DNA of 64,000 nt from the sequence record NC_023688.1; one strand, 5' to 3'. Position numbers and translations under genes: made by a program. Position 1 is the first letter of the stretch. Every line of letters starts with the position of its first letter. Positions 36,030 to 57,854 of the stretch are shown one piece after another. The notes beneath the pieces were generated by a model. The model saw nothing but the letters and a program-made list of their open reading frames with translations. It was not told the origin of the DNA and did no database searches.

Positions 36030-36066
36030 AGAGTCATTTCCATTAGTGAATATGACTCTATTTAGT
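36029..36066 (-). promoter_or_regulatory. Late promoter plus RBS-occluding hairpin of gene 49
   Basis: ACTAAATA 36066-59; 9-bp IR 36029-37 / 36052-60 reaching the start codon. Confidence 0.75.
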
Positions 36067-36950
36067 TAGAAGTCACCGAACAGATCGGTCAACCCTTTAT
36101 CTCGATTGAATTCGTCAAGAGTTTTTAGCCATTTCATCGTCTCGTTTTCTTCGAGATCTTTTATCTCGGCGTCGAAGTCAAGAGATTTTGATTTAGCTTT
36201 CGCTAGATTAGCATAGTTATCTTCGCCTCTCCACTTGAACATCAGATAAGCTCTCGCGTACATTCTCGGCGGATAAGTGAATTCTCGATAGTCTATGCCT
36301 TTGCTATACTCGGGATAAGGCAATTTTTCTTTCTTGCACTTTACCTTTCTGTCTAGCCAATAAATGTAGCGATAAGTTTTGACATCAAACCACTTGCATT
36401 TATCATCGAGAAGCATTCTCCAACGTTCGAGCATAGAACCCGGTCGTTTTGTGTTCTCGAACGGAACATGATGAAACACTTCTCCGGTTTCGGTGTTCTC
36501 GGCAAATAGAGTTTGATCGAAACCGTAGTAATCGAAATTCGATGCTTTGTAGATTGTACCACAACCAAGTCTACCATCAGCAAAGCTTTGAATTGCTTTG
36601 ATATGAGGATAACACTTGCGAATGATTTTAAATGACGCACCGAGCATAGTGGTTTCGCCATTATGCCCGATACTATCATCAATCCACAATCGATTCAACT
36701 CGATTATGTTATTTGATTCAAGTTCATCTGAAATTGATTTGTAAGAACCCGGGTTCATCAGATTCCCAAACACAGCAACCCCAAGAAGAACATCATCACG
36801 AAACACGCCAATGTTCACTATTCCAAACGAGGTATTCCACTTTTTCGAGTAATGATTTTTCTCAATCATTTCTCTTGCAACGTCTCGGTCTACTTCCATG
36901 AATGTCAACAGACCGTTATTTTTTGTTTGTTTGTGTATAACGTATTTCAT
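36066..36950 (-). CDS. Mom-like DNA modification protein (GNAT fold)
   Basis: IEKNHYS, GVAVFG, IELNRLW, QSFADGRLGCGTIYKASNFDYYG; C-terminus GLTDLFGDF. Confidence 0.8.
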   Translation of the reverse strand: MKYVIHKQTKNNGLLTFMEVDRDVAREMIEKNHYSKKWNTSFGIVNIGVFRDDVLLGVAVFGNLMNPGSYKSISDELESNNIIELNRLWIDDSIGHNGETTMLGASFKIIRKCYPHIKAIQSFADGRLGCGTIYKASNFDYYGFDQTLFAENTETGEVFHHVPFENTKRPGSMLERWRMLLDDKCKWFDVKTYRYIYWLDRKVKCKKEKLPYPEYSKGIDYREFTYPPRMYARAYLMFKWRGEDNYANLAKAKSKSLDFDAEIKDLEENETMKWLKTLDEFNRDKGLTDLFGDF

Positions 36951-36958
36951 TACTCTCC

Positions 36959-37540
36959 TTATGCTTCCCACTTCAGGATTTGATGCGTTTCGATATATTT
37001 GATGTTTGATTTCACCATTTTGTCGTTTTTATGCATATACCAGTTGCCGTTTTTGTCATAAGCATAGATTAGCCCAGTCTGACCCATAAACAGCATTGCA
37101 TTCGATGATGGGTTATTAGTAAACGATGTATAACTAATGATCCCACCTTGTTCCATGAATCCCTGAACAAAGCCTATGAATCGAGTAACAACACGACTCG
37201 GCGGAATACCATTTTCTTGACTCATGATTCGAAGTGGGAAATTGCGACCAATTGCAATCTCTTTCTGACGTTTTACATCGGCACCGACCCAGATTTTGTC
37301 GTCTTTCAGTATCAGATTAATCGGACTCGAATACTCACTATTGATCCAGCTATCACCTTTCAGATGATAAAACTTAGCAGTGACATCCATATCACCGATT
37401 GTCATGAAAAACGTGGCTGCTTTTGCTTTCGAATCAAACTCAACAAGTCGGCAGCGTTTGCTTTTGATGATAGTATAATCACCAACACACAACTCTCGGT
37501 ATTGATCTTCTGGCTTTGCGATTTCTTCAATTACAAACAT
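36959..37540 (-). CDS. Hypothetical protein
   Basis: 193-aa ORF in tight operon. Confidence 0.65.
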   Translation of the reverse strand: MFVIEEIAKPEDQYRELCVGDYTIIKSKRCRLVEFDSKAKAATFFMTIGDMDVTAKFYHLKGDSWINSEYSSPINLILKDDKIWVGADVKRQKEIAIGRNFPLRIMSQENGIPPSRVVTRFIGFVQGFMEQGGIISYTSFTNNPSSNAMLFMGQTGLIYAYDKNGNWYMHKNDKMVKSNIKYIETHQILKWEA

Positions 37541-38061
37541 TAATCATATCTCCATGGCAAATCGAGTACATGTTCCAGACTACCGTCATTGGTAGAGTAG
37601 AGTTGAACGGCTTCATAATCGCCAGATTCAACAGCGATAGCATAGTGCGCCATGCCTTTGTTGTCAATCAAAATCAAACAAGGATCTGCTTCTATGATGC
37701 CAATTCGCACACCCTCAACTTTAGAGCTGATTTTATCCCATAGCAGTGTGATCCCAGTTTCGGCAACAACTTTCATTTCATCAACAAAATCACCAACATT
37801 AATCACGCTGCGATTAGTATAGAAAAGCTCTTCGTTTTCGATTGTATAGTCGGACATATGAATTAGATACATCGGGCGACCAATCGGATCTTTTGCATTG
37901 CGCCAGCGTCCATTTTCAAACACGAGTTCGGAATAAGCGATTTCTCCGATTGTGATCTTGATTGAGTTCGATGTTACCTCAGTCAAAACACCTTGCAGTC
38001 CTTTTACACGAACAACATTGCCGATTTCAACTTTTTTCTTGTCTTCTGAATAACGAAACAT
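37540..38061 (-). CDS. Hypothetical protein
   Basis: 173 aa, overlapping start/stop. Confidence 0.65.
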   Translation of the reverse strand: MFRYSEDKKKVEIGNVVRVKGLQGVLTEVTSNSIKITIGEIAYSELVFENGRWRNAKDPIGRPMYLIHMSDYTIENEELFYTNRSVINVGDFVDEMKVVAETGITLLWDKISSKVEGVRIGIIEADPCLILIDNKGMAHYAIAVESGDYEAVQLYSTNDGSLEHVLDLPWRYD

Positions 38062-38062
38062 G

Positions 38063-38635
38063 TTAACCCCGATATTGATTGACTACACAGATATGGGTAT
38101 TGTTAATGAACATACGGCCTTCCGAGTCCGGTTCTACAAAGTAGAGTGTTTGTCCAGTTGCAACAATAACACGCTCTTTACCGTCTTCGGTTTTCACCAC
38201 AATAGCGTTTCTTTCGGACTTGCAGTTATGAAAAATGATCTCGTTTTTAGACATACCAAACGAGCCCACAGCCATCACCACACCCTTGTAATAGATAGAC
38301 TCGACGCAGAAGTCGATAATCTCACCAGCAGCGATTGGCTGCTTTATACCGTAATCATACAGCATACCAAGACTCATGCCATAGCGAGAGTTCACACCGC
38401 TACCAGTAATTTCGTGACCGCGTATGTCATACGTCGCGTCCGGGTGATACATTCGATAACGATATGATTTGGAAGTCAGTTGATAAAAAACAACTTCTAC
38501 CTTTTCTCCCGTCTCTGAGTTAGTCAGATAAACTTTCTTGTCTTCAATTTTGTCGATAGTCAGGAGTTCGTCGCGATGCAAGCGAATCGAATCACCAACG
38601 GTCAGACGCTTTGGGTTAACAATTTTACAAATCAT
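38063..38635 (-). CDS. Hypothetical protein
   Basis: 190 aa, operon context. Confidence 0.65.
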   Translation of the reverse strand: MICKIVNPKRLTVGDSIRLHRDELLTIDKIEDKKVYLTNSETGEKVEVVFYQLTSKSYRYRMYHPDATYDIRGHEITGSGVNSRYGMSLGMLYDYGIKQPIAAGEIIDFCVESIYYKGVVMAVGSFGMSKNEIIFHNCKSERNAIVVKTEDGKERVIVATGQTLYFVEPDSEGRMFINNTHICVVNQYRG

Positions 38636-38805
38636 TTATTCATTCTCATTTCACGTTTAAGGCGTTCGATACGCTGTTTAATAGCGATACCGTCGGGAGT
38701 ACACACAGAAGCACCAGAAGCGGTATGAATCTGCATAGAGTACACATTGATTTTGATCATCGGCTTGTACTTCATACGATTAAGCAGACGCTTCAAGTAA
38801 TTCAT
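38632..38805 (-). CDS. Small hypothetical protein
   Basis: MNYLKRLL start after SD GAGGAG and promoter TTGACA-16-TATACT. Confidence 0.6.
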   Translation of the reverse strand: MNYLKRLLNRMKYKPMIKINVYSMQIHTASGASVCTPDGIAIKQRIERLKREMRMNK

Positions 38806-38880
38806 GATTATCTCCTCAGTTGAATACCAGTAGTATAGACGTTTCCGATATGATGTCAACTAAAAAATGTCGCGCCAGCG

Positions 38881-39001
38881 ACTGCGGAGCTAACTCATTG
38901 TAACCTAATGAGAAGAGAAGATAGATCTTCATTAAAGGTATATAAGGAACTTTATCTTCTCTTCTTTTAACATTTAGCGGCAAAGCCGCAGTGCTACGCA
39001 C
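38881..39001. repeat. Non-coding palindromic element, copy B
   Basis: 13-bp IR 38911-23 / 38953-65 and outer 7-bp IR actgcgg/ccgcagt; inverted copy of 22139-22248. Confidence 0.85.
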
Positions 39002-39003
39002 AT

Positions 39004-39462
39004 TTAGTATCTTAGATTGAAGCGAGTTAACACAATGTTATTGGTACTATAATCTAATGTGATGTTATACCAGCGACCATACTCGGTACATACATTGCTA
39101 TAACCGATCTTACAATTCGGACTTGCCCATTGCAGAGTGTTGGCAATGCCTTGATCTGTTCTATCTGAACTCATTTTGACCAGCACATTTTTACCAGTGT
39201 TTACTATGCAACCGCTACTAATGAAATCTTGATCGAACTCTTGTGGCTTAATCTCGATGTCAATCTTGCGAATAAAGCGCATAGGCATAGGCACCTCAGC
39301 ATCCTTTAGCTTTAGCATGACACTGTATTCAGCTAGGATATCAGCCTCCAAAACGCGATTGGTAAGCTGTGAGTGATACAGCTCGATTACTTGTTCTTTC
39401 GATAGATCTGGTTTATTTTCGAATTCATAGAAATCAACCATGTTTATAATTTGTACTCTCAT
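39004..39462 (-). CDS. Hypothetical protein
   Basis: 152 aa, SD GGAG. Confidence 0.65.
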   Translation of the reverse strand: MRVQIINMVDFYEFENKPDLSKEQVIELYHSQLTNRVLEADILAEYSVMLKLKDAEVPMPMRFIRKIDIEIKPQEFDQDFISSGCIVNTGKNVLVKMSSDRTDQGIANTLQWASPNCKIGYSNVCTEYGRWYNITLDYSTNNIVLTRFNLRY

Positions 39463-39476
39463 TTATTTCTCCAATG

Positions 39477-39498
39477 AAAAAGGGCCCGAAGGCCCTTT
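39477..39498 (-). terminator. Intrinsic terminator
   Basis: aaagggcc-cgaa-ggcccttt with U tract. Confidence 0.85.
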
Positions 39499-39502
39499 GT
39501 TT

Positions 39503-39721
39503 TTAGATTTCACTCAGATGTATACCGTTTATTGCTTCAACTTTGGTGCCGTCTCGCAACACAACATCAAATGAGTTATAGGCGTTTGCACAAATGATTG
39601 TTACGTGTTCGCCATACACCTGTGCTTTCAACAGCTTACCGAACACTACATCACCATAAGAGAATTCCCACTCGGATGCGTCTACCATGTCCAGTTTAAC
39701 GATTTTTGCTTTTGCTTGCAT
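39503..39721 (-). CDS. Hypothetical protein
   Basis: 72 aa, cassette RBS CTGAGGAAAACATAATG. Confidence 0.65.
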   Translation of the reverse strand: MQAKAKIVKLDMVDASEWEFSYGDVVFGKLLKAQVYGEHVTIICANAYNSFDVVLRDGTKVEAINGIHLSEI

Positions 39722-39775
39722 TATGTTTTCCTCAGTTGTTTTGCTTCAATGAGGATATAATATCAGAACCACGGA

Positions 39776-40129
39776 TCAGTGCAAGCACTTTTTCATAAAT
39801 TCGTGATGTTTTTTTCGATTGAAGGTATATCCGAACTCAGGACGAGCCACTATACCTTCAAACAAAACGTGTTTCTTTGCTACCACTGTGACATCATAGC
39901 CGATCAGTTCGCGCTCGCCATCAATATTCGGGACTTTGATCTCACGCTCTACCTGTTCTTGAACAACAACACCGTGAATAGTCCGGAACAAATAACCGGT
40001 AACTTTTTTCTTGATCATAACGGGAATAGTGAAAAGCTCTTTGATTCGAATTCCTTCGATGTGACCATTAGCAATCATTTGTTGATAAACAGCCAGAGAC
40101 GCTTTCCAATCTTCTTTCTTGATAAACAT
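39776..40129 (-). CDS. Hypothetical protein
   Basis: 117 aa, SD AAGGA. Confidence 0.6.
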   Translation of the reverse strand: MFIKKEDWKASLAVYQQMIANGHIEGIRIKELFTIPVMIKKKVTGYLFRTIHGVVVQEQVEREIKVPNIDGERELIGYDVTVVAKKHVLFEGIVARPEFGYTFNRKKHHEFMKKCLH

Positions 40130-40138
40130 AGTATTTCC

Positions 40139-40366
40139 TTAAATCAGCTCAATGAATTTTGATGGGATATCTTCAAACAAAACACAATTCAACTCAAAGC
40201 TATATCCGTTTTCCGTCTCTTCAATTTCAAACTCGGTCTTTCGTTCGGCATGATAGAAGAAAACATGAATACCGTGAATACCAATAAGTCCATACAGATA
40301 ATCACTTACATCGGATGAAACAAAGGCTTCGATGTTGATTCCAAAATCTTTGATACGTGCTTTCAT
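40139..40366 (-). CDS. Hypothetical protein
   Basis: 75 aa. Confidence 0.6.
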   Translation of the reverse strand: MKARIKDFGINIEAFVSSDVSDYLYGLIGIHGIHVFFYHAERKTEFEIEETENGYSFELNCVLFEDIPSKFIELI

Positions 40367-40746
40367 TAACGACCCTCACGACAAGAAATAAAACCAAAGA
40401 TACCATGAGCGGATGCTTGGCTCATTGCGGAACGCCAATCGGAAACGTTACCACGAACATACTTAGAAGCAGCTTTCCAGCCATTCGCTTTCATGATGTT
40501 ACCGTTTTCCAAGTCAACAAACCACACAACACTTCTGGAGCTACCGTTGTAATCAGCGCGATAAACTCGGGCATTCTTACGACCGTATTCTACACCGTAG
40601 ACATTGCGATTAAGGTTTTGCTTCATGAAACATTTAACGTGGTCTTCATCATAACGCTTTTTCATGTCAGGGATAAGAATGTTCCAGTAATGATTTTCAC
40701 TGAACTCATTCATTTCACGGATCATTTGCTCGATTGCTGCTTTCAT
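40366..40746 (-). CDS. Hypothetical protein
   Basis: MKAAIEQ start with cassette RBS; GRKNARV...VVWFVD..NGNIMKANGWK motif. Confidence 0.65.
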   Translation of the reverse strand: MKAAIEQMIREMNEFSENHYWNILIPDMKKRYDEDHVKCFMKQNLNRNVYGVEYGRKNARVYRADYNGSSRSVVWFVDLENGNIMKANGWKAASKYVRGNVSDWRSAMSQASAHGIFGFISCREGR

Positions 40747-40820
40747 GATGTTTTCCTCAATGTTTCGTTTCGATGTGGCCATAATAACAGATACAGCCAC
40801 ACGCGCAAGCACTTTCTTAA

Positions 40821-41393
40821 TTATTTTTCGATACCAGTGGTATTATAGTTGTGATCGATTTTATCGAAAAATTCGTTTACCAGTTCTTTCATTTCTTCAT
40901 TATGCAACGGACAATCTCGATTCACTCGACGGAACACATTACCCGGTATGTGTTGTGGACAAGTGCAGTGCGGCAAATTGTACTTGTGGAAAGACGAATC
41001 GATATCAAAACCCCAGAGAGATTGCAATTCGTATTCGATATCCCGTAGCCAAGCAAGATGATCAGCAATGCGTTGTTTCTGAACTACTTGACCAACAGTT
41101 CCAACATTGTAAAGTTCCTCGTTCTTTAGACGCTTTACATGCAAATCGCGATATCGTTGCAGTTGATCGATCTTGAGAATCGTTTCGTCTGATAGACCCC
41201 GAGAGATAGCCAGATCCAGATTAACGGTAGTATGACGCTGTTTGATAGCGCGTTCCCATTGTTCGGCCATATATGCAATGATCTTTTGTGCATTCGGTCG
41301 ATCTTTCGCTTCAAACGCACCAAGCAGTTTCAGCGCGTCTTTCTGTGCGATATTGATACGAAGTTTATCCGTATCGGTAATCAGTTTTTTCAT
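40821..41393 (-). CDS. Hypothetical protein with C-terminal Cys/His (zinc) cluster
   Basis: LQSLWGF...FHK..PHCTCP...CPLH. Confidence 0.65.
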   Translation of the reverse strand: MKKLITDTDKLRINIAQKDALKLLGAFEAKDRPNAQKIIAYMAEQWERAIKQRHTTVNLDLAISRGLSDETILKIDQLQRYRDLHVKRLKNEELYNVGTVGQVVQKQRIADHLAWLRDIEYELQSLWGFDIDSSFHKYNLPHCTCPQHIPGNVFRRVNRDCPLHNEEMKELVNEFFDKIDHNYNTTGIEK

Positions 41394-41617
41394 TTGACAA
41401 ATTCCATCAGTTGTTGTTCGAAACCACGAGCGTTAGCATAAGAAACAACGTCTTCTCCACCCGCGATCATGTGACGACGCAGAGATTCCAAAAAGTAATC
41501 GAACTCGCTAAAACCAACAGAACTTTGCATTTTCAAATGCCAGTTGATTTTTTGATCCAGTTCGGTCAGATTGATTGTGTGATGTTTCCAATGAAATATT
41601 CGATTTTGACCTTTCAT
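41390..41617 (-). CDS. Hypothetical protein
   Basis: 75 aa, SD AAGGAG, own promoter. Confidence 0.6.
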   Translation of the reverse strand: MKGQNRIFHWKHHTINLTELDQKINWHLKMQSSVGFSEFDYFLESLRRHMIAGGEDVVSYANARGFEQQLMEFVK

Positions 41618-41636
41618 AACAATCTCCTTTTAAGAT

Positions 41637-41671
41637 GGGAGCATTATTACATGCTCCCGGATTTTCGTCAA
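41637..41671 (-). promoter_or_regulatory. Early promoter with 8-bp IR
   Basis: TTGACG-17-AATAAT; IR gggagcat / atgctccc. Confidence 0.65.
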
Positions 41672-42589
41672 TCACTTTTTACCAACAAACCAAGCAACTA
41701 CCAGAGAGAAAGTGCGATCAGCGTTTTTGCAACCGGCAGCTTCATAAGCAGCGATGAATTCCGCTTTGGTCTTGATCCCGTTTTCCCAGATTTGAACAGC
41801 GGTCTTGGACGGTTTGTGAGCAACCAACAGACCACTCGGAGCCATGTGACGCTTCGGGGTAGCGACTGCGGTATTAGCAGCAACTGGCAGAGCTTTAGGA
41901 GCTACTACAGCAACAGGAGTAACAACCTTGGCTTTAGCAATAGCAACTTTCTTCTGAGTGTCAACCACGTTAGTTTTAACAGTGTAAGGAGCGACTTCGT
42001 TATCACGGGTCGGAACAACATTCATTGCAGTTTTCTGAACTTCGCCAACAAAGTGAGATTTGTCCAGACGACGGGAAACGCCGTTAACAGTGGTCAAGTA
42101 GTAATGACCTGCCATCACTTTGTTATGACGAACTTGACCGAGTTTAATAGATTTACCGTGAACATTGTATTCATATTCAGCGGTGGCCAGTTCCAGTTGG
42201 TGATAAGTGTGAGCTTGACCACCCAGCATTTCATGCAGGAACTTCCAACGAGAGTCATGACCGCTTTTTTGACGCTGAACATAATCAACAACGTGAGCGA
42301 TTTCATGGCTAACTGTTTCGTCCAGCATATGCCACCAAGCTTTTTCGTTCATGATCATCATGTTGACGTTGAAACGAATGGCATACTTGCGAGAGTCAAA
42401 ACCACCAGCTTTGCGACCAGTCATAACAGCTTGACCAGCGGCACGACCTTTCAGATTGAATTCAACTTTCAGATTCTTACCGATTACCAGATTCGCGTCG
42501 AAGTGTTCGTTTGCCATTTTCAGATCGTGATTGATGCGAGCGGTCAGAGCAGCGATGGCGTTTTGTTTCATTTCGATTGTAGTCAGCAT
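41672..42589 (-). CDS. SprT-like zinc metalloprotease with low-complexity C-terminal tail
   Basis: NLKGRAAGQA, IRFN, HEIAH (HExxH), GHDSRWK. Confidence 0.85.
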   Translation of the reverse strand: MLTTIEMKQNAIAALTARINHDLKMANEHFDANLVIGKNLKVEFNLKGRAAGQAVMTGRKAGGFDSRKYAIRFNVNMMIMNEKAWWHMLDETVSHEIAHVVDYVQRQKSGHDSRWKFLHEMLGGQAHTYHQLELATAEYEYNVHGKSIKLGQVRHNKVMAGHYYLTTVNGVSRRLDKSHFVGEVQKTAMNVVPTRDNEVAPYTVKTNVVDTQKKVAIAKAKVVTPVAVVAPKALPVAANTAVATPKRHMAPSGLLVAHKPSKTAVQIWENGIKTKAEFIAAYEAAGCKNADRTFSLVVAWFVGKK

Positions 42590-42670
42590 GATGTTTTCCT
42601 CAGTTGTGTATCTCGTTTCGATGTAGCTATATTAACAGAAACCGGATTCTGTGCAAGGACTTTTCCGGAT

Positions 42671-42701
42671 AAAATAAAAAAAAACCACCCGAAGGTGGTT
42701 T
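42671..42701 (-). terminator. Intrinsic terminator
   Basis: aaaccacc-cgaa-ggtggttt with long U tract. Confidence 0.88.
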
Positions 42702-42996
42702 AGACTTTCTTTGTAGCCATTTTCAGCAAGTGCCTGAGTTGTGCGCTATCAATATTCGTTTTGATTTGTTCTGCCAAATCAGCTGGGTTTAAATCTGGCA
42801 GTGCATCGGCATACGCTTGATAAACATCATCGGCACTGTCAAACCCACGATATCGCTTGATTCGATTCTTGGTTATTGACCGCATCAAGGACGATTCGAA
42901 TTGATCTCGATAGATTCCAGATTTTACCACCATTCGATCAATAAAAGCGGCGATATGATAGAGAACATACAACAAGACAAATTGAACGTATTTCAT
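42700..42996 (-). CDS. Hypothetical protein
   Basis: 98 aa, SD AAGGAG. Confidence 0.6.
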   Translation of the reverse strand: MKYVQFVLLYVLYHIAAFIDRMVVKSGIYRDQFESSLMRSITKNRIKRYRGFDSADDVYQAYADALPDLNPADLAEQIKTNIDSAQLRHLLKMATKKV

Positions 42997-43038
42997 ACTT
43001 CTCCTTAAATGAAAAGAGGGCTTTCGCCCTCTTATTGA

Positions 43039-43986
43039 TTACTGCATTTGTTTCAGAAACAGAGGAGCTTGACCGTTGCCCATCATAGTGAAGTTAGCAG
43101 GAACTTGACCATTCCAACCTTCACCAGCTTGTTTCATTTGAACTTCCAGACGCTTCAGCTCGATAATCTGCGGAGTCAGAGAAGATGCCAATTTCTGGTT
43201 ACCAATCGCGGTTTGTTCAGCCATGTAACGATCTGCATCAGCTTTTTGTTTTACGCCATCAGCATATGCTTTGGCTTCCACGAATGTCTTGTAAGCTTCT
43301 GCTTCAAACTTCGCTTTGTTCGCGGCAGCGTTACCCTTAGCGGTTGCTTCGGTAGTCTGTGCGGCAGTGGTAGCGATTCGCAGTTGAGATTTCTCAGCTT
43401 CTTCTTTCTGAATTCGATCTTGAGTTTGCAGAATCTGATTCTGAATACGCGGATCGAAAGTTACGTCCTGAATCAGAATTTCTTGCAGAGTGATACCGGT
43501 TCCAGTCAATGCTTCTTGCAGGCGACGCTTGGTATTCTCTTGCATGGTGGTAACGTTGAAACTGTCAGCCAGACCACGTGAATCCGCAATTTTACGACCT
43601 TCGTCTTTGATAATGCTGGTCAGGAACTGAGACATCGCTTTATCAACAAACATTTCCATAGTACCGTAGTTCTTTTTGATGAACGGGGTCTTGGAGTTAT
43701 CAACACGATACAGAACGGCAACGTTCGCGGTACTGTTGAAACGGTCTTTGGTCGGAATCAACAGATTCTCTTTAACAAACTTGTTGTTACGAGTGTCGAA
43801 AGTATCGAATCCCATCAGCGGGTTTACAAAGTGCAAACCTTCTTCCAGAGGACGATCTTGAACTTCACCCATGATGGTACCGACTTTGGTAGTACCAGCA
43901 TCAACGATTGTGTAAGAGTTCATTGCCAGAATAGCAGCAAACAGACCACCAACAGCAACACCACCAAGTTTAAACATATCGTTCAT
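43039..43986 (-). CDS. SPFH/band 7 (prohibitin-like) membrane protein
   Basis: N-terminal TM helix, EGLHFVNP, coiled-coil AAQ/EAEA repeats, LTPQIIELKRLE...WNGQVP. Confidence 0.88.
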   Translation of the reverse strand: MNDMFKLGGVAVGGLFAAILAMNSYTIVDAGTTKVGTIMGEVQDRPLEEGLHFVNPLMGFDTFDTRNNKFVKENLLIPTKDRFNSTANVAVLYRVDNSKTPFIKKNYGTMEMFVDKAMSQFLTSIIKDEGRKIADSRGLADSFNVTTMQENTKRRLQEALTGTGITLQEILIQDVTFDPRIQNQILQTQDRIQKEEAEKSQLRIATTAAQTTEATAKGNAAANKAKFEAEAYKTFVEAKAYADGVKQKADADRYMAEQTAIGNQKLASSLTPQIIELKRLEVQMKQAGEGWNGQVPANFTMMGNGQAPLFLKQMQ

Positions 43987-44330: not shown

Positions 44331-44356
44331 AATGTATTCCTCATTCGTTATTTGAT

Positions 44357-45758: not shown

Positions 45759-46688
45759 TTAAGAAAAGATAATTCGAACTTTTTTCTTAAAAATTTTCCA
45801 CTTCAAATCGCTGATAATCGCATTCATGATAGGCATGATCTGCTTGTAACGATCTGCGCTTTCTGTGCTAGTACCATGAGCGTTTCTGATTCGCTCTTTA
45901 AACTTCTTATAGGTAATGCCATTCTGACAACCAGCACTCACACAAACCTCATTTTCATGAGTAAAGAACAACACGTTGCGACCGTACTTTCCACACCCAG
46001 CAAGCATGAAATGATCACCGAGATTCAATTCAGCGCGATCCGGCAGCTTAGTATTAGACAGTTTGACACTCTCGCCAATCTTAGCCGAACCAGCTTGAAC
46101 GGAATGCAAATCAACACATTGATCGATAACACTATAATCACCAATCGATGATTTGTCAATAGACACAGAACGTTTGATCTCGCTATCTCGTCCGATATTA
46201 GAACGACTAATATTAACTCCATCCCATAGATGCGTATTGTAACCGATTTTGGTACCGGTACCTAATGTGCAACTCGAACCGATTCTAGCACCACTACAAA
46301 TACAACATCTTTCATAAATCGATGTATTGTAACCGATTCTGACGCTGTTTTGAATAAGAGTATTCGACATAATCAAAACGTTCATGCCGATTTGAACTCC
46401 ATCTGAAATCATTACATCGTCTTTGATTCGAGCGCGACCTTCGATCACGCAATTCTCACCGATATAACAGCTTCCGAGTTTGGAACTCATTATATGAGGA
46501 TAGAAAGTGGTACCTTTACCTACCCACAATCTTTCTGTGGTTTTAGGCAACTTGACAAAACTTTCAATCTTGGCACCAACATCGCCAGCTTTAACAAATT
46601 TGTCGCGACTAGCGGCAGGATGATAAAAGTTGTAATCTACTAACGCTTCGATGCAACCATCTTCATTGATTTTCCAGAGTTCAGTCAT
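45759..46688 (-). CDS. Left-handed beta-helix (hexapeptide repeat) protein
   Basis: Many [LIV]-G-x4 repeats (YIGENC, QIGMNV, RIGYNT, RIGSSC, KIGYNT); C-terminal VSAGCQNG. Confidence 0.8.
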   Translation of the reverse strand: MTELWKINEDGCIEALVDYNFYHPAASRDKFVKAGDVGAKIESFVKLPKTTERLWVGKGTTFYPHIMSSKLGSCYIGENCVIEGRARIKDDVMISDGVQIGMNVLIMSNTLIQNSVRIGYNTSIYERCCICSGARIGSSCTLGTGTKIGYNTHLWDGVNISRSNIGRDSEIKRSVSIDKSSIGDYSVIDQCVDLHSVQAGSAKIGESVKLSNTKLPDRAELNLGDHFMLAGCGKYGRNVLFFTHENEVCVSAGCQNGITYKKFKERIRNAHGTSTESADRYKQIMPIMNAIISDLKWKIFKKKVRIIFS

Positions 46689-49908: not shown

Positions 49909-49930
49909 GATATATTCCTCTTGATAAGAT

Positions 49931-50295: not shown

Positions 50296-50489
50296 TACAG
50301 ATACTCCGTTGAAGAACTGATTTCTTTACCGTTCAGAGTGATCGACACTTTCAAAGTGACATCATTATAATAACCATGACGACGGTTAATATTGATGCTC
50401 AGATGTTGTTCCAGATATTCCTGAATTTTCTCTTCAAACCAGCCATTGTCATGACGGCAGCGTTCTTTGTCTTTATCGCTCATTACCAT
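50295..50489 (-). CDS. Hypothetical protein (paralog of next)
   Basis: KIQEYLEQHL...ISSSTEY. Confidence 0.6.
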   Translation of the reverse strand: MVMSDKDKERCRHDNGWFEEKIQEYLEQHLSININRRHGYYNDVTLKVSITLNGKEISSSTEYL

Positions 50490-50716
50490 TCATCCTTTTG
50501 ATTGATCATGTCACAAATGTATTCGGAACTGCTTGAAATCGTTTCGTCTCCGATGTTTATATCAACGCGGATTCGACCGCATTGTGTATAAAGCGATACA
50601 TTCAGATTTTCTTTCAGATAAGCTTTTATCTGTTCGTTGAGATTAAGTTTACTGGATTCTGCCTCGGTGTCAACATCTTTTTTCAGATCCGACCCATGTT
50701 CTTGTGTTCCTGACAT
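50483..50716 (-). CDS. Hypothetical protein (paralog of previous)
   Basis: QIKAYLKENL...ISSSSEY. Confidence 0.6.
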   Translation of the reverse strand: MSGTQEHGSDLKKDVDTEAESSKLNLNEQIKAYLKENLNVSLYTQCGRIRVDINIGDETISSSSEYICDMINQKDEW

Positions 50717-51171
50717 TGCGTAGTCCTATAACCATCAAATACACTTCTGGCACGATAATAGTCCTTGACTGTAAAGCCATTAGCACTATCAACGTGAATG
50801 AAATTTTCTTTTTGTGATTCCAACATATCGTCATCATCGTCAATGATAACATACTTTTTACAATCGAGGTGTTTGTCTAACCATTCTTTGATTAGCTCTC
50901 CGCGATGTTCACCAACGAGATCCCGAGTCTTGAAATCTTCATGCAGACATCCGGGAGGAAATCCAGCTAGTGCTAGATGATCTCTCACCATCTGAACATC
51001 ACAGCCAAGTCTCCAAGTGCTACTGTATACCACTTTCAAATTGTAGTCAACGATAAGTTTTGATAGGAGCTTTACAGCCCCTATATCTACCATTTGTCCA
51101 TATTTCAGATAGCTAGAATCAGAATGATAAACGCCATCAACATCGAGAAACAATACTCTCAGTTCTTTCAT
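50683..51171 (-). CDS. HAD-superfamily phosphatase (Swiss-Army-Knife RNA-repair HAD-like)
   Basis: LFLDVDGV, VYSSTWR, RGELIKEWL, YVIIDDDDDM. Confidence 0.85.
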   Translation of the reverse strand: MKELRVLFLDVDGVYHSDSSYLKYGQMVDIGAVKLLSKLIVDYNLKVVYSSTWRLGCDVQMVRDHLALAGFPPGCLHEDFKTRDLVGEHRGELIKEWLDKHLDCKKYVIIDDDDDMLESQKENFIHVDSANGFTVKDYYRARSVFDGYRTTQCQEHKNMGRI

Positions 51172-52415
51172 ATGTCAAGCGTCCACATTGTATCTTTCAG
51201 CCAAGACGGATATTCTCTACCTTCGCTGGTATCAGTTTCGTCTAGTGTGTTGCAATAAGCAATACAAAATTCTAACTGCGAACGTTGTTCTTCGCCGAGT
51301 AACGCAACCAAACGCTCTATGGCAGCGTTTCTATTGTCCAGCATATACTCGCAAGCGTAGATACGAGAAACGATTCTGGTAGCACCCTGACCAGCGTTGA
51401 GCATACGCTTTACAATACCTTCGAGTATGTTACCGTCACCGCACGATGGCTCAAAGAAAGTCGAACCTGAATTCAGATCATCGATGTCCGTATAATCTAA
51501 CATCTGATTAACGATTTCAATCGGAGTAAAGAATTCTGCCGTTTTCTTTTGACGTTCTCGCTCGATTGTGCTAGTGAAGTTTCTGGTTTCATCAACAACT
51601 TTCGTTTTGTGTCTGATACCAGAATAGTAATCTTCGATTACTTCCGGCACTTTATGTCTGATATGAGTTAATTCAAATTTCTCAAATAGTTCATCATCAG
51701 TCCAGCGTCTGGTCATATCTAACCATGGTATCGCATTCAGTTCTCCGCTGTCAAGATGAATGTTCATCTTATACAAAGAAAGCATGAATCTAGCGAAATC
51801 TGTTTTCAGATAAGCAACAAAGTTCTCTGCCTCTTCTAACGTTTTGAATGCAAAGTTTTGACCACGCTTAGGCATTTCAGTTGTCGGAACGTAGTCGGTC
51901 GGAAACATGGTAAAGAAATCAGAATTAAAGCGTTTGCCAGCTTCTGGTGGGTGTCCTCTAACACTCGCTATAGTGACGTAATGACTTGCGCCAATAACCT
52001 CACCGGAGCATTCCATATGCGCTACGCTAGGATATTTCATCTTGTCATAGACATCAGAACACCAATCGCCAAGCATATTGATTTTGTCTAAAGGCAATTT
52101 AGCAGTGTAATATCCAGAGACATCGATTAGATCTGATTTCTTTGTGGTATCAATAACAGTTATACTAAGCGGAGTCAGAAACCCAGCTTTGAAAACGGCG
52201 TTACCGTCGAACAAATGAATACTCGTTTTGTGCGCTTTCATGTTGCCAAGAAGTTCAGCAACGCGCTTTGTTTGTCGGGTCGGCTTTCTGTTTACAAAGG
52301 GGCCAGACGGATGCACAGCGATTGTGACATCACATTTCTTTACCCCTAAGTTAACAAAGTCAACGTGCAAACCCGCACTATATGGCGGGTTTGCGATCAT
52401 ATAATCAAAGCGCAT
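51168..52415 (-). CDS. Amino-DNA methyltransferase (N6mA/N4mC), permuted motif order
   Basis: N-terminal DYMIANPPY; C-terminal AEFFTP, FFEPSCGDGNIL, IYACE. Confidence 0.8.
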   Translation of the reverse strand: MRFDYMIANPPYSAGLHVDFVNLGVKKCDVTIAVHPSGPFVNRKPTRQTKRVAELLGNMKAHKTSIHLFDGNAVFKAGFLTPLSITVIDTTKKSDLIDVSGYYTAKLPLDKINMLGDWCSDVYDKMKYPSVAHMECSGEVIGASHYVTIASVRGHPPEAGKRFNSDFFTMFPTDYVPTTEMPKRGQNFAFKTLEEAENFVAYLKTDFARFMLSLYKMNIHLDSGELNAIPWLDMTRRWTDDELFEKFELTHIRHKVPEVIEDYYSGIRHKTKVVDETRNFTSTIERERQKKTAEFFTPIEIVNQMLDYTDIDDLNSGSTFFEPSCGDGNILEGIVKRMLNAGQGATRIVSRIYACEYMLDNRNAAIERLVALLGEEQRSQLEFCIAYCNTLDETDTSEGREYPSWLKDTMWTLDI

Positions 52416-53100
52416 GAGTGCTCAATCGCTCGCTGTATTCGCGCTCCATGCCGAACTCTTTCGCAATCTTCATAATAGCGATGTTCATTTTTACCAGCTT
52501 ATCACGTTCGACGATATAATCATTCATCATTACATCGAGTTCGAGTGCATGACGTCGCTTGATTTCAGCTTCAATTTGTTTGATTTGAAGTTTCAAAATG
52601 TCGGTAGAAACTTCTTTGATGTCCTTTTCCACTTTAGCGATGATCTCCGGTTTCGGTTGCTTAGGAGCTTTTTGTAGCAAATCGATTTTGCGTTCGGGTA
52701 TACGAACGTTCATTTTGAATCCATAATCGGTGCGCTTTGCCGCGAAAGGAGAAAATGCTTTCATTCGAATGAAAATCTCGTCAATGATAGACTGACTACC
52801 ACGACTGAATTCAAACTCAACGATGTTAACAATTATGCCTTCGCCGAGTTTCGTTACATTAACACCCATCAACTCCGGGAACTGACCGTCTTCAATATAC
52901 GCGCCAAACAGTTCGCTTAGATGCGCTTTGTTGAACGGACGACTACCAATCATCGATTCTGTATAGCGTCTGATGTTTTTGCGGAACTTCGCTGGGTCGA
53001 TATCGACTTTAGTTCCAGCTGGCTTGGTATGAGTTTCACACGCAATATTCAGGAATTTGTACCACTGATTACGCGCAACCAACTTTCGTTTTTCGTTCAT
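52405..53100 (-). CDS. Hypothetical protein with C-terminal coiled coil
   Basis: 231 aa, SD GGAG. Confidence 0.65.
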   Translation of the reverse strand: MNEKRKLVARNQWYKFLNIACETHTKPAGTKVDIDPAKFRKNIRRYTESMIGSRPFNKAHLSELFGAYIEDGQFPELMGVNVTKLGEGIIVNIVEFEFSRGSQSIIDEIFIRMKAFSPFAAKRTDYGFKMNVRIPERKIDLLQKAPKQPKPEIIAKVEKDIKEVSTDILKLQIKQIEAEIKRRHALELDVMMNDYIVERDKLVKMNIAIMKIAKEFGMEREYSERLSTHAL

Positions 53101-53139
53101 AATTTCTCCAATGAGAGGGCTTTTAACCCTCTCACTATA

Positions 53140-54318
53140 TTAGATACCAAACATAAAATCAAGCCCAGATTTAGCATTTTCTTTATCGTGTGCTTCGATT
53201 GCTTTCTTATACGCTTCGAGTTCAGACGGAACACCAATAAACTCATGAGAATAGCTAACGCGATCTTTCACAAACTTGGGATCGACCGAGTGTTTCATCA
53301 TTTTGTTTGGTGTAACTGGTGTTCTATTGCTGGACGTCGCTTTCCACTTGATAGAACGTTCGTGGTACTCTCCGAGCTTAGGGTTAGTGGTACGAGTATA
53401 GAATCTCTTACCTCTCGCCAGAAGCTGGTAGGCGACGGCCTCGGTCATCTTCGGACCAATCCCCATTCCCTGAAAGTCTGGAAGCACAACAAGACGATGT
53501 GCAATCCACGCATCTTTGACTGTGCCAGATGGCAACGGGAGAATACTAACGAATCCAACCGGTACATCACCCCATTTCATCAAGTAACAATGGCTTGCCA
53601 CGTTGATTTCGCGAGAGAGGTAGTGATGGTCGGCAAACCCAAGATCTGAGTAGGCTTTTGCTGATACAGGTGTGATGTCGAGCGCAATCGCTGGAAACCG
53701 CCTTTCTGACCCCCGAATAATTAGTTGCTCATTCGATACGTCAAACACCCAATCCGGTTGCAGCCACTCGATGATATCATAGTGACAAGACGCAAACACA
53801 AGACCTTTGATGCCAGTACGATCAACGTATTTTCTAATACTCTTTGAGCAAGAAATAGCAACGTTACGGTCAACAACCGATGTAAACTCGTCAATAACGG
53901 TATTATCAACCAGACTACGGGCCAAGTTAGCGCGGAACTGTTGACCATTAGAAAGAGAATGAAACGGTTTTGCCCAGTGTGGGACAGAGTTGAAACCAAC
54001 GGCACCAAGTCGTTCTTGCGCATCTTCAACACTATCAAAGTGTGAAGCAATCGCTTTGTTGTGTTCCCACTTTACTTCTTTTTCGATACCGAAATTACGA
54101 AGAATGGTTGACTTACCACTACCACTTGGACCAACAATCAAACCAATGCCGTATTCTTTCGGTACTTCATGTGGCATCAGATTCTTGATCTTGGTAGTGG
54201 TAGTTCCATCAAACTCAAAATCCATTTGCTTGGTTACTTCAACGACAATAGCGTCGAGTTCAACTTTGGTTTCGCGAGTGATATATCCACTTTCGTCGGT
54301 AAATTGTTCGAGACTCAT
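53140..54318 (-). CDS. ABC-type ATPase fused to GNAT acetyltransferase
   Basis: GPSGSGKST, LSNGQQ, VIDEF, SCH; GNAT HRLVVLPDFQGMGIG; C-terminus SGLDFMFGI. Confidence 0.88.
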   Translation of the reverse strand: MSLEQFTDESGYITRETKVELDAIVVEVTKQMDFEFDGTTTTKIKNLMPHEVPKEYGIGLIVGPSGSGKSTILRNFGIEKEVKWEHNKAIASHFDSVEDAQERLGAVGFNSVPHWAKPFHSLSNGQQFRANLARSLVDNTVIDEFTSVVDRNVAISCSKSIRKYVDRTGIKGLVFASCHYDIIEWLQPDWVFDVSNEQLIIRGSERRFPAIALDITPVSAKAYSDLGFADHHYLSREINVASHCYLMKWGDVPVGFVSILPLPSGTVKDAWIAHRLVVLPDFQGMGIGPKMTEAVAYQLLARGKRFYTRTTNPKLGEYHERSIKWKATSSNRTPVTPNKMMKHSVDPKFVKDRVSYSHEFIGVPSELEAYKKAIEAHDKENAKSGLDFMFGI

Positions 54319-54335
54319 TAAATTCCTCCAATAAA

Positions 54336-54378
54336 AAGCGCGTGACTGTAATTTACCACAATGTCACGCGCTTGTAAA
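54336..54378 (-). promoter_or_regulatory. Promoter/terminator hybrid with 11-bp IR
   Basis: (G)TTTACA-17-TAAATT; IR aagcgcgtgac / gtcacgcgctt followed by U tract. Confidence 0.65.
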
Positions 54379-54379
54379 C

Positions 54380-55171
54380 TTAGAATGTCAGAAGATTTGA
54401 ACGAGCTTTGTTGATTTCTTCGATGATTGCTTGTTCTTCTTTTGCCATTTCGACTCGCTCTTTACGAAGACGCTCAATTTCAGCGTCGTGCAGTCGCATC
54501 TTCTCATTCAGCAAACGAATACGGTCAAACTTCTCACCGTGATTCAGTTCGATGAAACGATTCACGCTTACCAGATACTGACGCTTGATTTCATTCTCAC
54601 TGACCGGCGGCAGAGAAGAAGTGATGGTCGGTTCATCCAGTTGTACTACTTCCACAGTTTCTTCCTTTTTGTATGGTTTCACCAGATCGGCAGCAACCAA
54701 TTCTTTGTTTTCTTGTTTAAGATACGGCATCATTTTCAGCGGTTTCAGTGTTTTCAGATCCGGAGACATAAAGATGTGAGCATCCAGTTGAATAACACCG
54801 TTCACAATCTTGGCATACCCCAACTTAACCATGTTGGAGTTTTCCATATGATTCACGTATTTGGAACGAATGACCATACGAATACAGTGAAACGATGCAA
54901 ACTGATTGATAGCGCGAACAACAGACGCAGTATCCCACACCACAGCTTCATCACCAAATGCACGATAGAACTTACGTTTCATGTTGAGATTGGTTTCAAG
55001 ACGATCAGCTTTCTTTACGTGTTCGGCGGTATAATCGTTATACACGCGAATGGTTTGACCTTTTACGGTAACATTCTTGAAAAAGATGTGATTCAGAATC
55101 GCACGACAAGCGTTATGATTCTTGATTGATTCTTTCATCTTATTCCGATTTGATTTTACTTGACTGCTCAT
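54380..55171 (-). CDS. Hypothetical protein with C-terminal coiled coil (paralog of next)
   Basis: ILNHIFFKNVTVKGQT N-terminal motif. Confidence 0.7.
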   Translation of the reverse strand: MSSQVKSNRNKMKESIKNHNACRAILNHIFFKNVTVKGQTIRVYNDYTAEHVKKADRLETNLNMKRKFYRAFGDEAVVWDTASVVRAINQFASFHCIRMVIRSKYVNHMENSNMVKLGYAKIVNGVIQLDAHIFMSPDLKTLKPLKMMPYLKQENKELVAADLVKPYKKEETVEVVQLDEPTITSSLPPVSENEIKRQYLVSVNRFIELNHGEKFDRIRLLNEKMRLHDAEIERLRKERVEMAKEEQAIIEEINKARSNLLTF

Positions 55172-56049
55172 TACGCTTCCTTAAAGCTGTATTTGTCGAG
55201 AATTTGAGTCATGATAGTGATTTTCGGTTGCAAAGTCAACATCACCTCATGATATTCTGCATATGCTTGTTGTTGTTCTGCAACAGCCTGATCAAGCTGT
55301 GCTTGTGCTTGTGCCAACAGTTGCTTGAACTGTTTCACATTGACACTCTTAGATTCAACAACGCGCTCCAGTTCTTGAAGTTGAGCGAAACCAGGCAGAA
55401 CTTTTTCGAAATCGATATTAAAAACATCTTGACTTTGAACTTCTTTCTTGCTCATTTCTTCCAGAGTTCGGACGTTCTCGGTTCTGGTGTTTTTATAGCA
55501 GATATCAAAGCCTATTGAATTTTTATCCGTGCGAACATCAAACAGTTTGTTTTCACCAAACACAGGAACAGTGATAACAACACGACTCTTATATTGTGTT
55601 GGGTCACAGTGCCAGACACGCATACCGGTTTCGCCGTCTTTGAATCCCCAGTTCTCCATAGAGAAGTGTTTGCCGAGATTTGAATTAAGCAGCTTCTCAG
55701 GAACTTGTGATTTGAAATACAATGCGATTTGCGTAGGAGAAATCACACGATATTGCCAAATGCTCGTTTGAAGACTAGGCCAAATCGGGCGCAATTTTTC
55801 GTATTGGTCATATTCCGCATTGACGTTGTTATACAACGATTTGCTAAAGAAACTATCGGTACCAAACATTGCCACGAATGCGGATGCAATGCGAACCAGA
55901 TTGGTACTGGAAAACATATTACCGTCAAACGCACGGGTCTGAGTCTTACCGTCGATAGTCACGTTTTCACAGAACAGGATCTGATTCATACGAACAACGA
56001 AGTTTTTGAATTTCTTGTCCTTGAATACCTGCTTACGTTCTTTTTTCAT
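55171..56049 (-). CDS. Hypothetical protein with C-terminal coiled coil (paralog of previous)
   Basis: MNQILFCENVTIDGKT; QAQAQLDQAVAEQQQ coil. Confidence 0.7.
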   Translation of the reverse strand: MKKERKQVFKDKKFKNFVVRMNQILFCENVTIDGKTQTRAFDGNMFSSTNLVRIASAFVAMFGTDSFFSKSLYNNVNAEYDQYEKLRPIWPSLQTSIWQYRVISPTQIALYFKSQVPEKLLNSNLGKHFSMENWGFKDGETGMRVWHCDPTQYKSRVVITVPVFGENKLFDVRTDKNSIGFDICYKNTRTENVRTLEEMSKKEVQSQDVFNIDFEKVLPGFAQLQELERVVESKSVNVKQFKQLLAQAQAQLDQAVAEQQQAYAEYHEVMLTLQPKITIMTQILDKYSFKEA

Positions 56050-56051
56050 TA

Positions 56052-56276
56052 TTAAGCCTCCGCTTTGATATAATCAACGATGTCGTCAAAGTTAGCAGAT
56101 TCCACGCCAACACCAGATTCATCATTGACACTAAACACCGTGCCGTAATCTTCATCTTCGCGTTGTGCTACAGTAAAAACTCGACCGTTCTTCATGTGGA
56201 CATTCATTTCATTTTGATTGTCCAGATCCAGATTGATGTATTTCACGGTTTCGATAGCGGAGATTTGAGCCAACAT
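56052..56276 (-). CDS. Hypothetical protein
   Basis: 74 aa, cassette promoter/RBS. Confidence 0.6.
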   Translation of the reverse strand: MLAQISAIETVKYINLDLDNQNEMNVHMKNGRVFTVAQREDEDYGTVFSVNDESGVGVESANFDDIVDYIKAEA

Positions 56277-56317
56277 GATGTATTCCTCTTTTGTTTTGAT
56301 GTAGCTATCTTAACAGA

Positions 56318-56851
56318 TCAGTATTCTACGTCAAGGACTTTTCTCGCATAATCCACGTTTTTTACACATTGAATTAGCTCACCAAGTTTTTCTTTCTTGA
56401 TAGTCAACGTGGTAAAATCACCGTCGCTATTCATATCAAAAATCACGTTCTCTTTTGACGTTCTAACACCAAGTCTTGAATCATTGATTTTCATTCGACC
56501 GACTTGAATGTCTTTAGATTTGAACACGGATTCGGTTACGATAGAATTCGATCTCTCGATAAACCTAACAAACTTGTCGTGGTCCGCTCGTTTCGGCAAC
56601 TGAAACAAAACCTTTTTATTAAAGTTCTCAGTTACCTCCATCACAGTAGTATGATCTTTGATATAAAATGAAATAGTGTAAAACTGATTGACACCAACAC
56701 CAGAACAAGCAACCGCTTCCTTATTGTTGGCAATCAACTGATTATAGAAATCCGACTGATCTACAATAGCGGCGTTTGCAGAACAAACCACAAACGCCAT
56801 TGCTATCTTAGTTGCCAGATTCTTCACATTCTTCGGGAAGAACGGAATCAT
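56318..56851 (-). CDS. Exported protein (Sec signal peptide)
   Basis: KNLATKIAMAFVVCSANA|A. Confidence 0.6.
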   Translation of the reverse strand: MIPFFPKNVKNLATKIAMAFVVCSANAAIVDQSDFYNQLIANNKEAVACSGVGVNQFYTISFYIKDHTTVMEVTENFNKKVLFQLPKRADHDKFVRFIERSNSIVTESVFKSKDIQVGRMKINDSRLGVRTSKENVIFDMNSDGDFTTLTIKKEKLGELIQCVKNVDYARKVLDVEY

Positions 56852-57131
56852 CACACAGCACCTCTTCTTCGTTAGTACCATTATCGACTTGTTGATCGTT
56901 ACCATTCTGCATAGCATTCATAAGCATCATGGTAGTTACCACGTTTGCGGCAGTGTTGGTATGAACTGCGGCATTGCTCACTGTAGTAGCAGGGCGAACC
57001 GGTGCGCTAACTGAGACTGGACGCGATACGGTCATCGGGCGGCTGATAGTCATTGGACGACTCATGCTAATAGCAGCGTTAGCAGAACCGATCATAGAAA
57101 ACAGAGCGATAGCCAGAATTGATTTTTTCAT
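56808..57131 (-). CDS. Exported low-complexity protein with SRPMT/SRPVS repeats
   Basis: MKKSILAIALFSMIGSANA|A then SRPMTISRPMTVSRPVSV. Confidence 0.7.
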   Translation of the reverse strand: MKKSILAIALFSMIGSANAAISMSRPMTISRPMTVSRPVSVSAPVRPATTVSNAAVHTNTAANVVTTMMLMNAMQNGNDQQVDNGTNEEEVLCDDSVLPEECEESGN

Positions 57132-57245
57132 TTGTACCTCAAACAGAATAGGCATAATGCCATGATAAGTATTGTTGTCAGTGTTTCCACTTTCTTAACC
57201 CTCTTGTAAAAGTTTTAAGAAAGTGGGGAACAAGTCCCCGACTTT

Positions 57246-57479
57246 TTAATCTACTTTTCTGATTACAACGTGAAACCCGTTGTTTTTCAGTTTTGTTTCA
57301 AGACGACAAGCTTTCTTAAAATCTTCAATCGTTGTTGTTGCGTTAAAACCGATTACATCACCAGCTTTAGAGCGAACAGCTACAGCTTTCATCACAGTAT
57401 CAACCAACAGAATTTCGTTGTTGTTGGTGATGGAGATATAACGCTCGGTCGGTACAACTACAGTGAAAACATATTTCAT
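57246..57479 (-). CDS. Hypothetical protein
   Basis: 77 aa, SD GAGGAG. Confidence 0.6.
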   Translation of the reverse strand: MKYVFTVVVPTERYISITNNNEILLVDTVMKAVAVRSKAGDVIGFNATTTIEDFKKACRLETKLKNNGFHVVIRKVD

Positions 57480-57524
57480 GATAAGCTCCTCTCAGAAAGT
57501 AGAGCTATCTTACACTCGCACGAA

Positions 57525-57854
57525 TCAGATGTCAAACATTTTCATCAAAGAAGATTTTTCTTTTTTCTCGACGTTTGTGGCAATAATCTCATGATCGCTT
57601 TTCGTCTTTGAACCACCGGTATATGTAACCGCAAAATCAACAATGCGATCAATTCCAAACGTTTCATCAAACAGTTGATGTTTTTTGTTGCAGAAAATGA
57701 CCTTATGTTTATTCATAAGATTCAAAGCATAACGCGATGATTCTTCTTGCAACTTATAGCCAAACGAGTTTCTATCGTCATATCTGGTAAAGCTATTGAT
57801 GTATGGCGGGTCCATAAACACCAACGAGTTTACGGGAAACCCGGTACTGCTCAT
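57525..57854 (-). pseudogene. C-terminal fragment of a Dam-like adenine methyltransferase
   Basis: VFMDPPY...VIFCN...HEIIATN with no SAM-binding motif I; has its own promoter and RBS. Confidence 0.65.

Follow-up and report, generated by a model that had tools for sequence, protein, structure and literature searches.

Polymerase-like C-terminal tails on predicted DNA-modifying enzymes of Aeromonas phage PX29: candidate docking peptides for the gp45 sliding clamp

The 64,000-nucleotide stretch analysed here (the window) corresponds, with 100% identity, to bases 1-64000 of the record of Aeromonas phage PX29, a T4-like phage (Straboviridae, Angelvirus). Five proteins encoded in the window, among them the gene 43 DNA polymerase (gp43), a Mom-family protein and a fusion of an ABC-ATPase with a GNAT domain (ABC-GNAT), end in similar short peptides. 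These tails are real and non-random. Sequence comparison suggests, with a probability of about 0.7, that they represent the gp45-docking motif of the gp43/gp33/gp55 class, placed on DNA-modifying enzymes. They are best classified as a new kind of client for a clamp-docking mechanism that is already known, and there are signs that the rule reaches much further.

Tails at the ends of five PX29 proteins

Every gene of the window lies on the minus strand. The reference tail carrier is the gene 43 family B polymerase (12471..15233; Pfam DNA_pol_B, PHROG 262 and record annotation), whose C-terminal tail, SLTDLFGDW, is encoded at 12474..12500. The Mom-family protein (36066..36950), a member of a DNA adenine-modifying family of the GNAT superfamily, ends in GLTDLFGDF (36069..36095), and the ABC-GNAT fusion, PX29p085 (53140..54318; Pfam ABC_tran and Acetyltransf_1, PHROG 11143), in GLDFMFGI (53143..53166). 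The other two carriers are a small conserved protein of unknown function (29453..29908; PHROG 23814) with the end LLSLFG (29456..29473), and the remnant of a Dam-family (D12 class) adenine methyltransferase gene (57525..57854) with the end SLMKMFDI (57528..57551). All five tails had been quoted in the preliminary description and all are found on the minus strand of the PX29 sequence at the genes it named. Its protein identities are likewise confirmed: family B polymerase, Mom, ABC_tran plus GNAT, a small open reading frame (ORF) matching DNA-methyltransferase PHROGs, and the gp45 clamp. In each of the five proteins the core of the tail is at the extreme C-terminus, followed by no more than two residues.

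The proposed docking platform is the sliding clamp encoded by gene 45 (17384..18061; Pfam gp45-slide_C, PHROG 223). The whole of PX29 gp45 matches the solved clamps of T4 and RB69 (1CZD and 1B77/1B8H; E about 1e-33 and 4e-31). The clamp loader, genes 62 and 44, is annotated in the record at 15740..17293. Both belong to a T4-type replication core that lies within the window and also includes gene 43, regA, genes 46, 47 and 55, and the nrd genes. In T4, gp33 and gp55 dock on gp45 through a C-terminal motif, and the holoenzyme does not form without the C-terminus of the polymerase (PMC9690074, the latter citing its ref. 64). The PX29 gp33, encoded outside the window, ends in ...TLEQFF. The late sigma factor encoded by gene 55 (22950..23474; record annotation) ends in ...GLSFLEDDDDADE, a looser variant of the tail and then an acidic run, and this end is conserved in Aeh1 and phiAS5.

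Enrichment of the tail was measured over all of the PX29 record, read locus by locus (360 ORFs, 71,642 residues). Of nine matches to the pattern L-x-x-[LM]-F-[GD], five fall in the last eight residues of an ORF, versus 0.063 expected (P 8e-9, or 6e-7 without gp43). Since this pattern was chosen after the data had been seen, an independent model was built from polymerases. In a sample of 145 full-length gp43-type representatives, clustered at 50% identity, L-x-x-[LMIF]-F terminates 90, and a scoring matrix derived from those 90 tails was used to scan every position of every PX29 ORF. The two best matches in the proteome are gp33 (18.0 bits) and gp43 (14.2 bits). Four C-terminal matches reach at least 8 bits (gp33, gp43, ABC-GNAT at 8.8 and Mom at 8.2), versus 0.30 expected; the tail of the Dam remnant scores 7.4 bits and that of the small protein lower still. 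A look-alike peptide is present six residues from the end of NrdB, the small subunit of ribonucleotide reductase (30402-31532). It is probably a subunit-docking tail, and as it scores 10.3 bits, the polymerase-derived matrix alone is not specific.

The closest correspondence is that between the Mom tail and the tail of the PX29 polymerase, which are equal at seven of nine positions; among the 145 other polymerases, no tail agrees with that of Mom at more than five of nine. Only two of the seven residues common to the two tails are encoded by identical codons, and the DNA downstream is unrelated. The different codons and the lack of common downstream DNA argue for selection on the peptide rather than a recent copying of DNA. 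A recent duplication of the end of gene 43 into the Mom gene is ruled out on the same grounds, and a common 3' regulatory DNA element was also considered and none is seen.

The tail carriers and their relatives

The Mom-family protein covers positions 2-201 of the 202 in profile PF25680 (E 4.9e-57; 193 bits, cut-off 27.1) and also matches PHROG 1384. The family is described as modifying adenine N6 in DNA (PMC7824862). Among Aeromonas phages it is found only in PX29 and AsFcp_1/2/4. The AlphaFold2 model has a predicted local distance difference test score (pLDDT) of 93, with low values at residues 285-294, which include the tail, predicted to be unstructured. The homologs compared are the 120 closest, of ~300 amino acids. 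Most of them end in a lysine-rich helix without any motif. In 19 of the 120 the end is Q-x-x-[LIM]-F, which belongs to the class described for bacterial beta-clamp partners (PMC9690074); the pattern has three internal matches in 34,339 positions. Polymerase-type tails are present in the PX29 cluster, in its closest relative (P0002, from a contig that spans 1.2 kb), and in P0024 and P0116. The last two lie in T4-like surroundings (contigs L025 and L026): P0024 adjoins endonuclease VII, as the PX29 Mom gene does, and P0116 is near gp33-like, gp59 and gp32 genes. On another contig (L017), which carries a host-type replisome-organiser gene, an N6_N4 DNA methylase and a Mom homolog with a tail of the beta-clamp type share one end peptide. 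Proteins encoded directly upstream of such beta-tailed Mom genes (L016 97-1044 and L017 8952-10001) end in ...DLPF, resembling the tail of single-strand-binding protein, which suggests that several terminal docking peptides are used by those phages.

The ABC-GNAT fusion belongs to a family that is predicted (Iyer et al. 2013) to acylate a DNA base, the modification being uncharacterised, and PX29p085 is a named member (PMC7824862, PMC8056088). Across 65 sequences, the glycines and the lysine of Walker A do not vary. A fold search returned ABC nucleotide-binding domains, GNATs and a weak match to a Kre33/NAT10-type acetyltransferase chain, while searches of NCBIfam and of Protein Data Bank (PDB) sequences gave generic ABC matches only. 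In the AlphaFold2 model (pLDDT 90.6), residues 383-392, again including the tail, have low pLDDT. Family members (>7,000 matches) normally stop a few residues past the end of the conserved core. An extra helix precedes the PX29 tail and is absent from most members, and a linker with a polymerase-type tail is found only in PX29 and its five nearest relatives. One of these (P0122) is in a T4-like context; another (P0137, contig L008) is three genes from a cluster of TET/JBP, GT1 and TAGT genes. The copy in the Nonlabens siphovirus P12024S ends in QISLF, of the beta-clamp class.

The genomic positions of ABC-GNAT genes lend support to the prediction that the family modifies DNA. In sibling Nonlabens phages, a primase gene and a helicase gene flank a slot that holds either this gene or a TET, TAGT and methylase cassette; in Porphyromonas phages the gene takes the place of Mom behind the same tail genes; and on a marine contig (L023) it is two genes from Mom. 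Sibling phages swap modification modules at one fixed slot, ABC-GNAT versus TET, TAGT and methylase in Nonlabens phages P12024S and P12024L (L019/L020), and Mom versus ABC-GNAT plus a formyltransferase-like gene in Porphyromonas phages 012a and 011a (L021/L022). In the window, a 415-amino-acid protein encoded two genes downstream of ABC-GNAT (51168-52415) narrowly misses the Pfam cut-off for N6_Mtase (borderline match, E 4.9e-4) and has no tail.

In both families, polymerase-type tails are found in T4-like contexts and beta-clamp-type tails in small phages without a clamp of their own; most other homologs have no tail. It is strongly supported by these sequences that the type of tail follows the type of clamp in the Mom and ABC-GNAT families.

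The Dam-like ORF is the remnant of a gene that was broken once, by a large truncation which took the N-terminal two thirds. It matches DNA-methyltransferase PHROGs. Both the full-length Dam of Klebsiella phage BIS47 (tblastn) and TIGR00571 (positions 173-256 of 267) match the C-terminal third only, and Pfam finds no domain in the ORF. A DPPY-type catalytic motif is kept, while the N-terminal part that binds S-adenosylmethionine (AdoMet) is gone. The possibility that the ORF encodes a small active methylase is ruled out, because the cofactor-binding part is missing and the DPPY-type motif alone is insufficient. The preliminary description counted three modifying genes with tails; as this ORF, its 'Dam fragment', is a C-terminal third that cannot methylate alone, there are two plausible tailed modifiers in PX29. 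The sequence marks the ORF as a relic, and its tail as evidence that the Dam from which it derives once had a tail. Immediately upstream of the ORF is a promoter-like site, and the remnant is confined to the Angelvirus group. In AsFcp_4 (L015, an unverified record) more of the Dam-like gene is left, spread over three reading frames, which requires at least two frameshifts, and the C-terminal end is different; the frame breaks may come from sequencing error.

The small conserved protein is encoded by a 151-amino-acid ORF that probably starts 14 codons further in, giving about 131 amino acids from the likely start. Searches of Pfam, PHROG and NCBIfam reveal no recognisable domain. Its homologs are found only in T4-like phages of Aeromonas (Angelvirus, Chrysonvirus and Cinqassovirus), and when these three genera are aligned, each position of the tail is either unchanged or substituted conservatively, F being replaced by W in Aeh1.

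At least three other T4-like genomes carry a polymerase-like tail on Dam, TET or glycosyltransferases. On the metagenomic contig L008, the TET, GT1, TAGT and ABC-GNAT tails score 13-21 bits with the polymerase-derived matrix, with one internal match in 6,686 positions, and a methyltransferase-like gene has a related end. The same contig has a DnaB-type helicase gene (277-2847) split by a homing-endonuclease gene on the opposite strand. In phage C48C1 (Kyanoviridae) the polymerase scores 20.8 bits, the adjacent D12-class adenine methyltransferase 18.9 and TET 15.5, and these three are the only C-terminal matches among 62 ORFs. Stenotrophomonas phage DLP_6 has the tail on its polymerase, TET and TAGT glycosyltransferase. 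No tail is present on the sugar-donor enzymes of the same clusters (an epimerase and UDP-glucose dehydrogenase in C48C1, a nucleotidyl transferase in DLP_6), in keeping with a device that only DNA-acting enzymes require. Full-length tailed Dam enzymes are present in other T4-like phages, and among the 120 closest homologs of the C48C1 Dam a tail past the end of the conserved core is found in 55, with four internal matches in 34,901 residues. In the T-even phage RB14, taken as a control, gp43 (...SLDFLFG) and gp55 show the expected motif. The T-even glucosyltransferases were considered as a further tailed example and are ruled out by the ends of the RB14 proteins.

Some further ends and genes of PX29 may be mentioned. 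The topoisomerase gp60plus39 (3128-4972) carries a polymerase-tail-like ELLEMLFG 23 residues ahead of its C-terminus, with a basic stretch after it. Elsewhere in the record, the baseplate hub protein gp26 (record 105270-106046; L003 41270-42046) ends in ...GLSDFFD (6.9 bits) and DNA ligase gp30 (record 163133-164620; L005 1133-2620) in ...KKFFG. These two may be further clamp clients, or the resemblance may be due to chance. Beyond the replication core lies a long run of early genes of unknown function, which includes a HAD_SAK_2 domain protein (50683-51171) and a hexapeptide-repeat acyltransferase (45759-46688).

Docking on gp45 and alternative explanations

In the proposed mechanism, the docking motif would have been added in PX29 to a Mom-family adenine modifier, to ABC-GNAT and to the small conserved protein, and formerly to a Dam methyltransferase. 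The tail peptides of Mom and ABC-GNAT are predicted from the structural models to be flexible behind a folded domain. The flexible last ~10 residues of each globular enzyme would insert into the hydrophobic pocket of DNA-loaded gp45, so that the tailed enzyme would be held on freshly replicated DNA or would slide along with the clamp. Modification of new DNA could then be prompt and processive, and come before host nucleases encounter it. We infer gp45 binding, timing at the fork, the chemistry and an anti-restriction benefit for the tailed PX29 enzymes. Such a benefit had been proposed for a phage lacking the hydroxymethylcytosine (hmC) and glucosylation pathway of T4. That premise agrees with the record, in which no dCMP hydroxymethylase, glucosyltransferase or dam gene is annotated, and with the listing of Aeh1 and PX29 among the T4 relatives without this network (PMC2993671). 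The central claim of the preliminary description, clamp-docking peptides on DNA-modifying enzymes, finds strong comparative support in the seven of nine positions common to Mom and gp43, in tails that track the type of clamp, and in the at least three other T4-like genomes.

Several observations weigh against docking on gp45 as the explanation. The tails of the PX29 modifiers score only moderately with the polymerase-derived matrix (8.2 bits for Mom, 8.8 for ABC-GNAT, 7.4 for the Dam remnant, and less for the small protein), and when gp43 and gp33 are left out the matrix test gives P 0.036. The tail of the Dam remnant is lost in AsFcp_4. The homologs are phylogenetically related, so that family-wide P values overstate their independence. 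The TET and TAGT-like proteins of Cr30 have only weak tails, and the ABC-GNAT copy of Vibrio phage vB_VmeM-32 (Straboviridae; L029 395-1558) is extended and ends in an unclear peptide, ...HIKDILDI, which is closer to the tail of the PX29 Dam remnant than to the usual polymerase tail. Mom and ABC-GNAT are both tail-less on the 156-kb marine contig L023. In RB14 no tail is found on alpha-glucosyltransferase (alpha-GT), the second glucosyltransferase or gp42, and a 2025 preprint could not reproduce the reported interaction of T4 alpha-GT with gp45. The RB14 ends, the preprint and the tail-less L023 copies together indicate that tethering to the clamp is not universal.

That short hydrophobic C-termini should resemble one another by chance is scarcely credible. 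The motif is indeed short, and its first definition followed inspection of the data, but the enrichment persists with an independently trained matrix and the pattern is replicated in four further loci and three protein families. A better case can be made for docking on some other common partner, such as the host beta clamp, single-strand-binding protein, or an adaptor of a protease or chaperone by which C-termini are recognised. Many different partners are served by short hydrophobic peptides at a C-terminus, the PX29 ribonucleotide reductase small subunit ends in a similar-looking peptide for subunit docking, and homologs in other phages clearly use a beta-type tail. However, the beta-clamp motif class defined for bacterial clamp partners has a leading Q (PMC9690074), and the PX29 tails lack the Q of this QL(S/D)LF class and fall outside it. 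The host beta clamp is therefore rejected as their docking site. The PX29 tails instead match the tail of the phage's own polymerase, as the enzyme tails do again in three other T4-like genomes, and another partner seems quite unlikely.

The two tailed proteins with no recognisable catalytic domain, the Dam remnant and the 131-amino-acid protein, might instead be clamp regulators or decoys, which would occupy pockets on gp45 and tune the access of polymerase, gp33 and gp55. Conservation of the small protein with its tail in three genera and the promoter-like site just upstream of the remnant are compatible with such a role. However, a remnant limited to the Angelvirus group, with a different end in AsFcp_4, looks like decay rather than a conserved regulator, and this explanation, which we consider unlikely, leaves Mom and ABC-GNAT uncovered. 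The tails might also be inherited baggage, with no function in PX29, of genes that arrived already tailed from other T4-like phages. Mom and ABC-GNAT are missing in the sister phages Aeh1, Ah1 and phiAS5, which marks them as recent acquisitions, and the Dam gene is decaying. Against this, the Mom tail is nearer to the PX29 polymerase tail than to any of the 145 others and is kept through synonymous change, which argues for adaptation after arrival and makes baggage very unlikely.

Docking on gp45 may itself be one case of a more general rule, under which a short C-terminal motif would bring phage enzymes that have polymerised DNA as their substrate to sliding clamps, the type of the motif matching the clamp used, either the phage's own gp45-type clamp or host beta. 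The sequences compared would bring at least six unrelated families under it: Dam/D12 and N6_N4 methyltransferases, TET/JBP dioxygenases, TAGT and GT1 glycosyltransferases, Mom, and ABC-GNAT. We regard the chances of this rule holding as even. It appears to be unrecognised so far. A literature search on clamp motifs together with phage DNA modification, Mom and methyltransferases found no description of clamp tails on such enzymes, although journal coverage was incomplete. Papers on phage TET and glycosyltransferases leave clamp tails unmentioned and used C-terminal tags, as did the recent alpha-GT pull-downs (2025 preprint).

Significance and comparison with known systems

By what means the T4 relatives that lack the hmC/glucose pathway escape restriction has been called an open question (PMC2993671). 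If the tails act as proposed, post-replicative hypermodification of DNA would be tied to the replisome by an explicit and searchable motif, and the prediction that the ABC-GNAT family modifies DNA would gain independent support. A tail matching that of the phage's own polymerase would also serve as a sequence-only marker for DNA-acting enzymes among genes of unknown function, and under the general rule the 131-amino-acid protein would be among the candidate DNA-modifying enzymes. The C-terminal tags used in the TET, glycosyltransferase and alpha-GT work would sit on the docking peptide and may mask interactions.

Phage Mu offers a partial parallel. Its protein MuC, which acts in late transcription, has beta-clamp motifs (PMC12867686), and Mu encodes the prototype Mom; however, the clamp motif is on the transcription activator and not on Mom, about which nothing is reported in that paper. 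The reported interaction of T4 alpha-GT with gp45 is alike in that a modification enzyme would ride on the clamp. It differs in that the in vitro data are those not reproduced in 2025, and in that the PX29 cases have an explicit motif, whereas RB14 alpha-GT is without a polymerase-like tail. In eukaryotes, Dnmt1 has a PCNA-binding motif (PMC9690074), so that a DNA methyltransferase is brought to new DNA by a short clamp motif, as would be the case for a tailed phage Dam. Clamp and motif class are different there, the purpose is maintenance of an epigenetic mark and not evasion of restriction, and no evolutionary relation is implied; the PX29 system, if confirmed, would be a prokaryotic-virus parallel.

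Among the nearest known systems is the docking of the T4/RB69 gp43 tail on gp45 (Berdis et al. 1996, cited in PMC9690074; RB69 clamp entry 1B8H). Here too the peptide is at the extreme C-terminus with a core of L-x-x-hydrophobic-F, and clamp and loader are encoded by the same phage, as in PX29. The RB14 gp43 end, ...SLDFLFG, is nearly identical to that of the ABC-GNAT relatives P0122 and P0123 and is close to that of PX29 ABC-GNAT. The difference is in the carriers, which in PX29 are predicted DNA base-modifying enzymes and not replication or transcription proteins. T4 gp33 and gp55 show that non-polymerase clients can use the same pocket through a terminal peptide, and it is the PX29 gp33 that tops the polymerase matrix. 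Those clients couple transcription to replication, whereas the PX29 clients would couple DNA modification to it.

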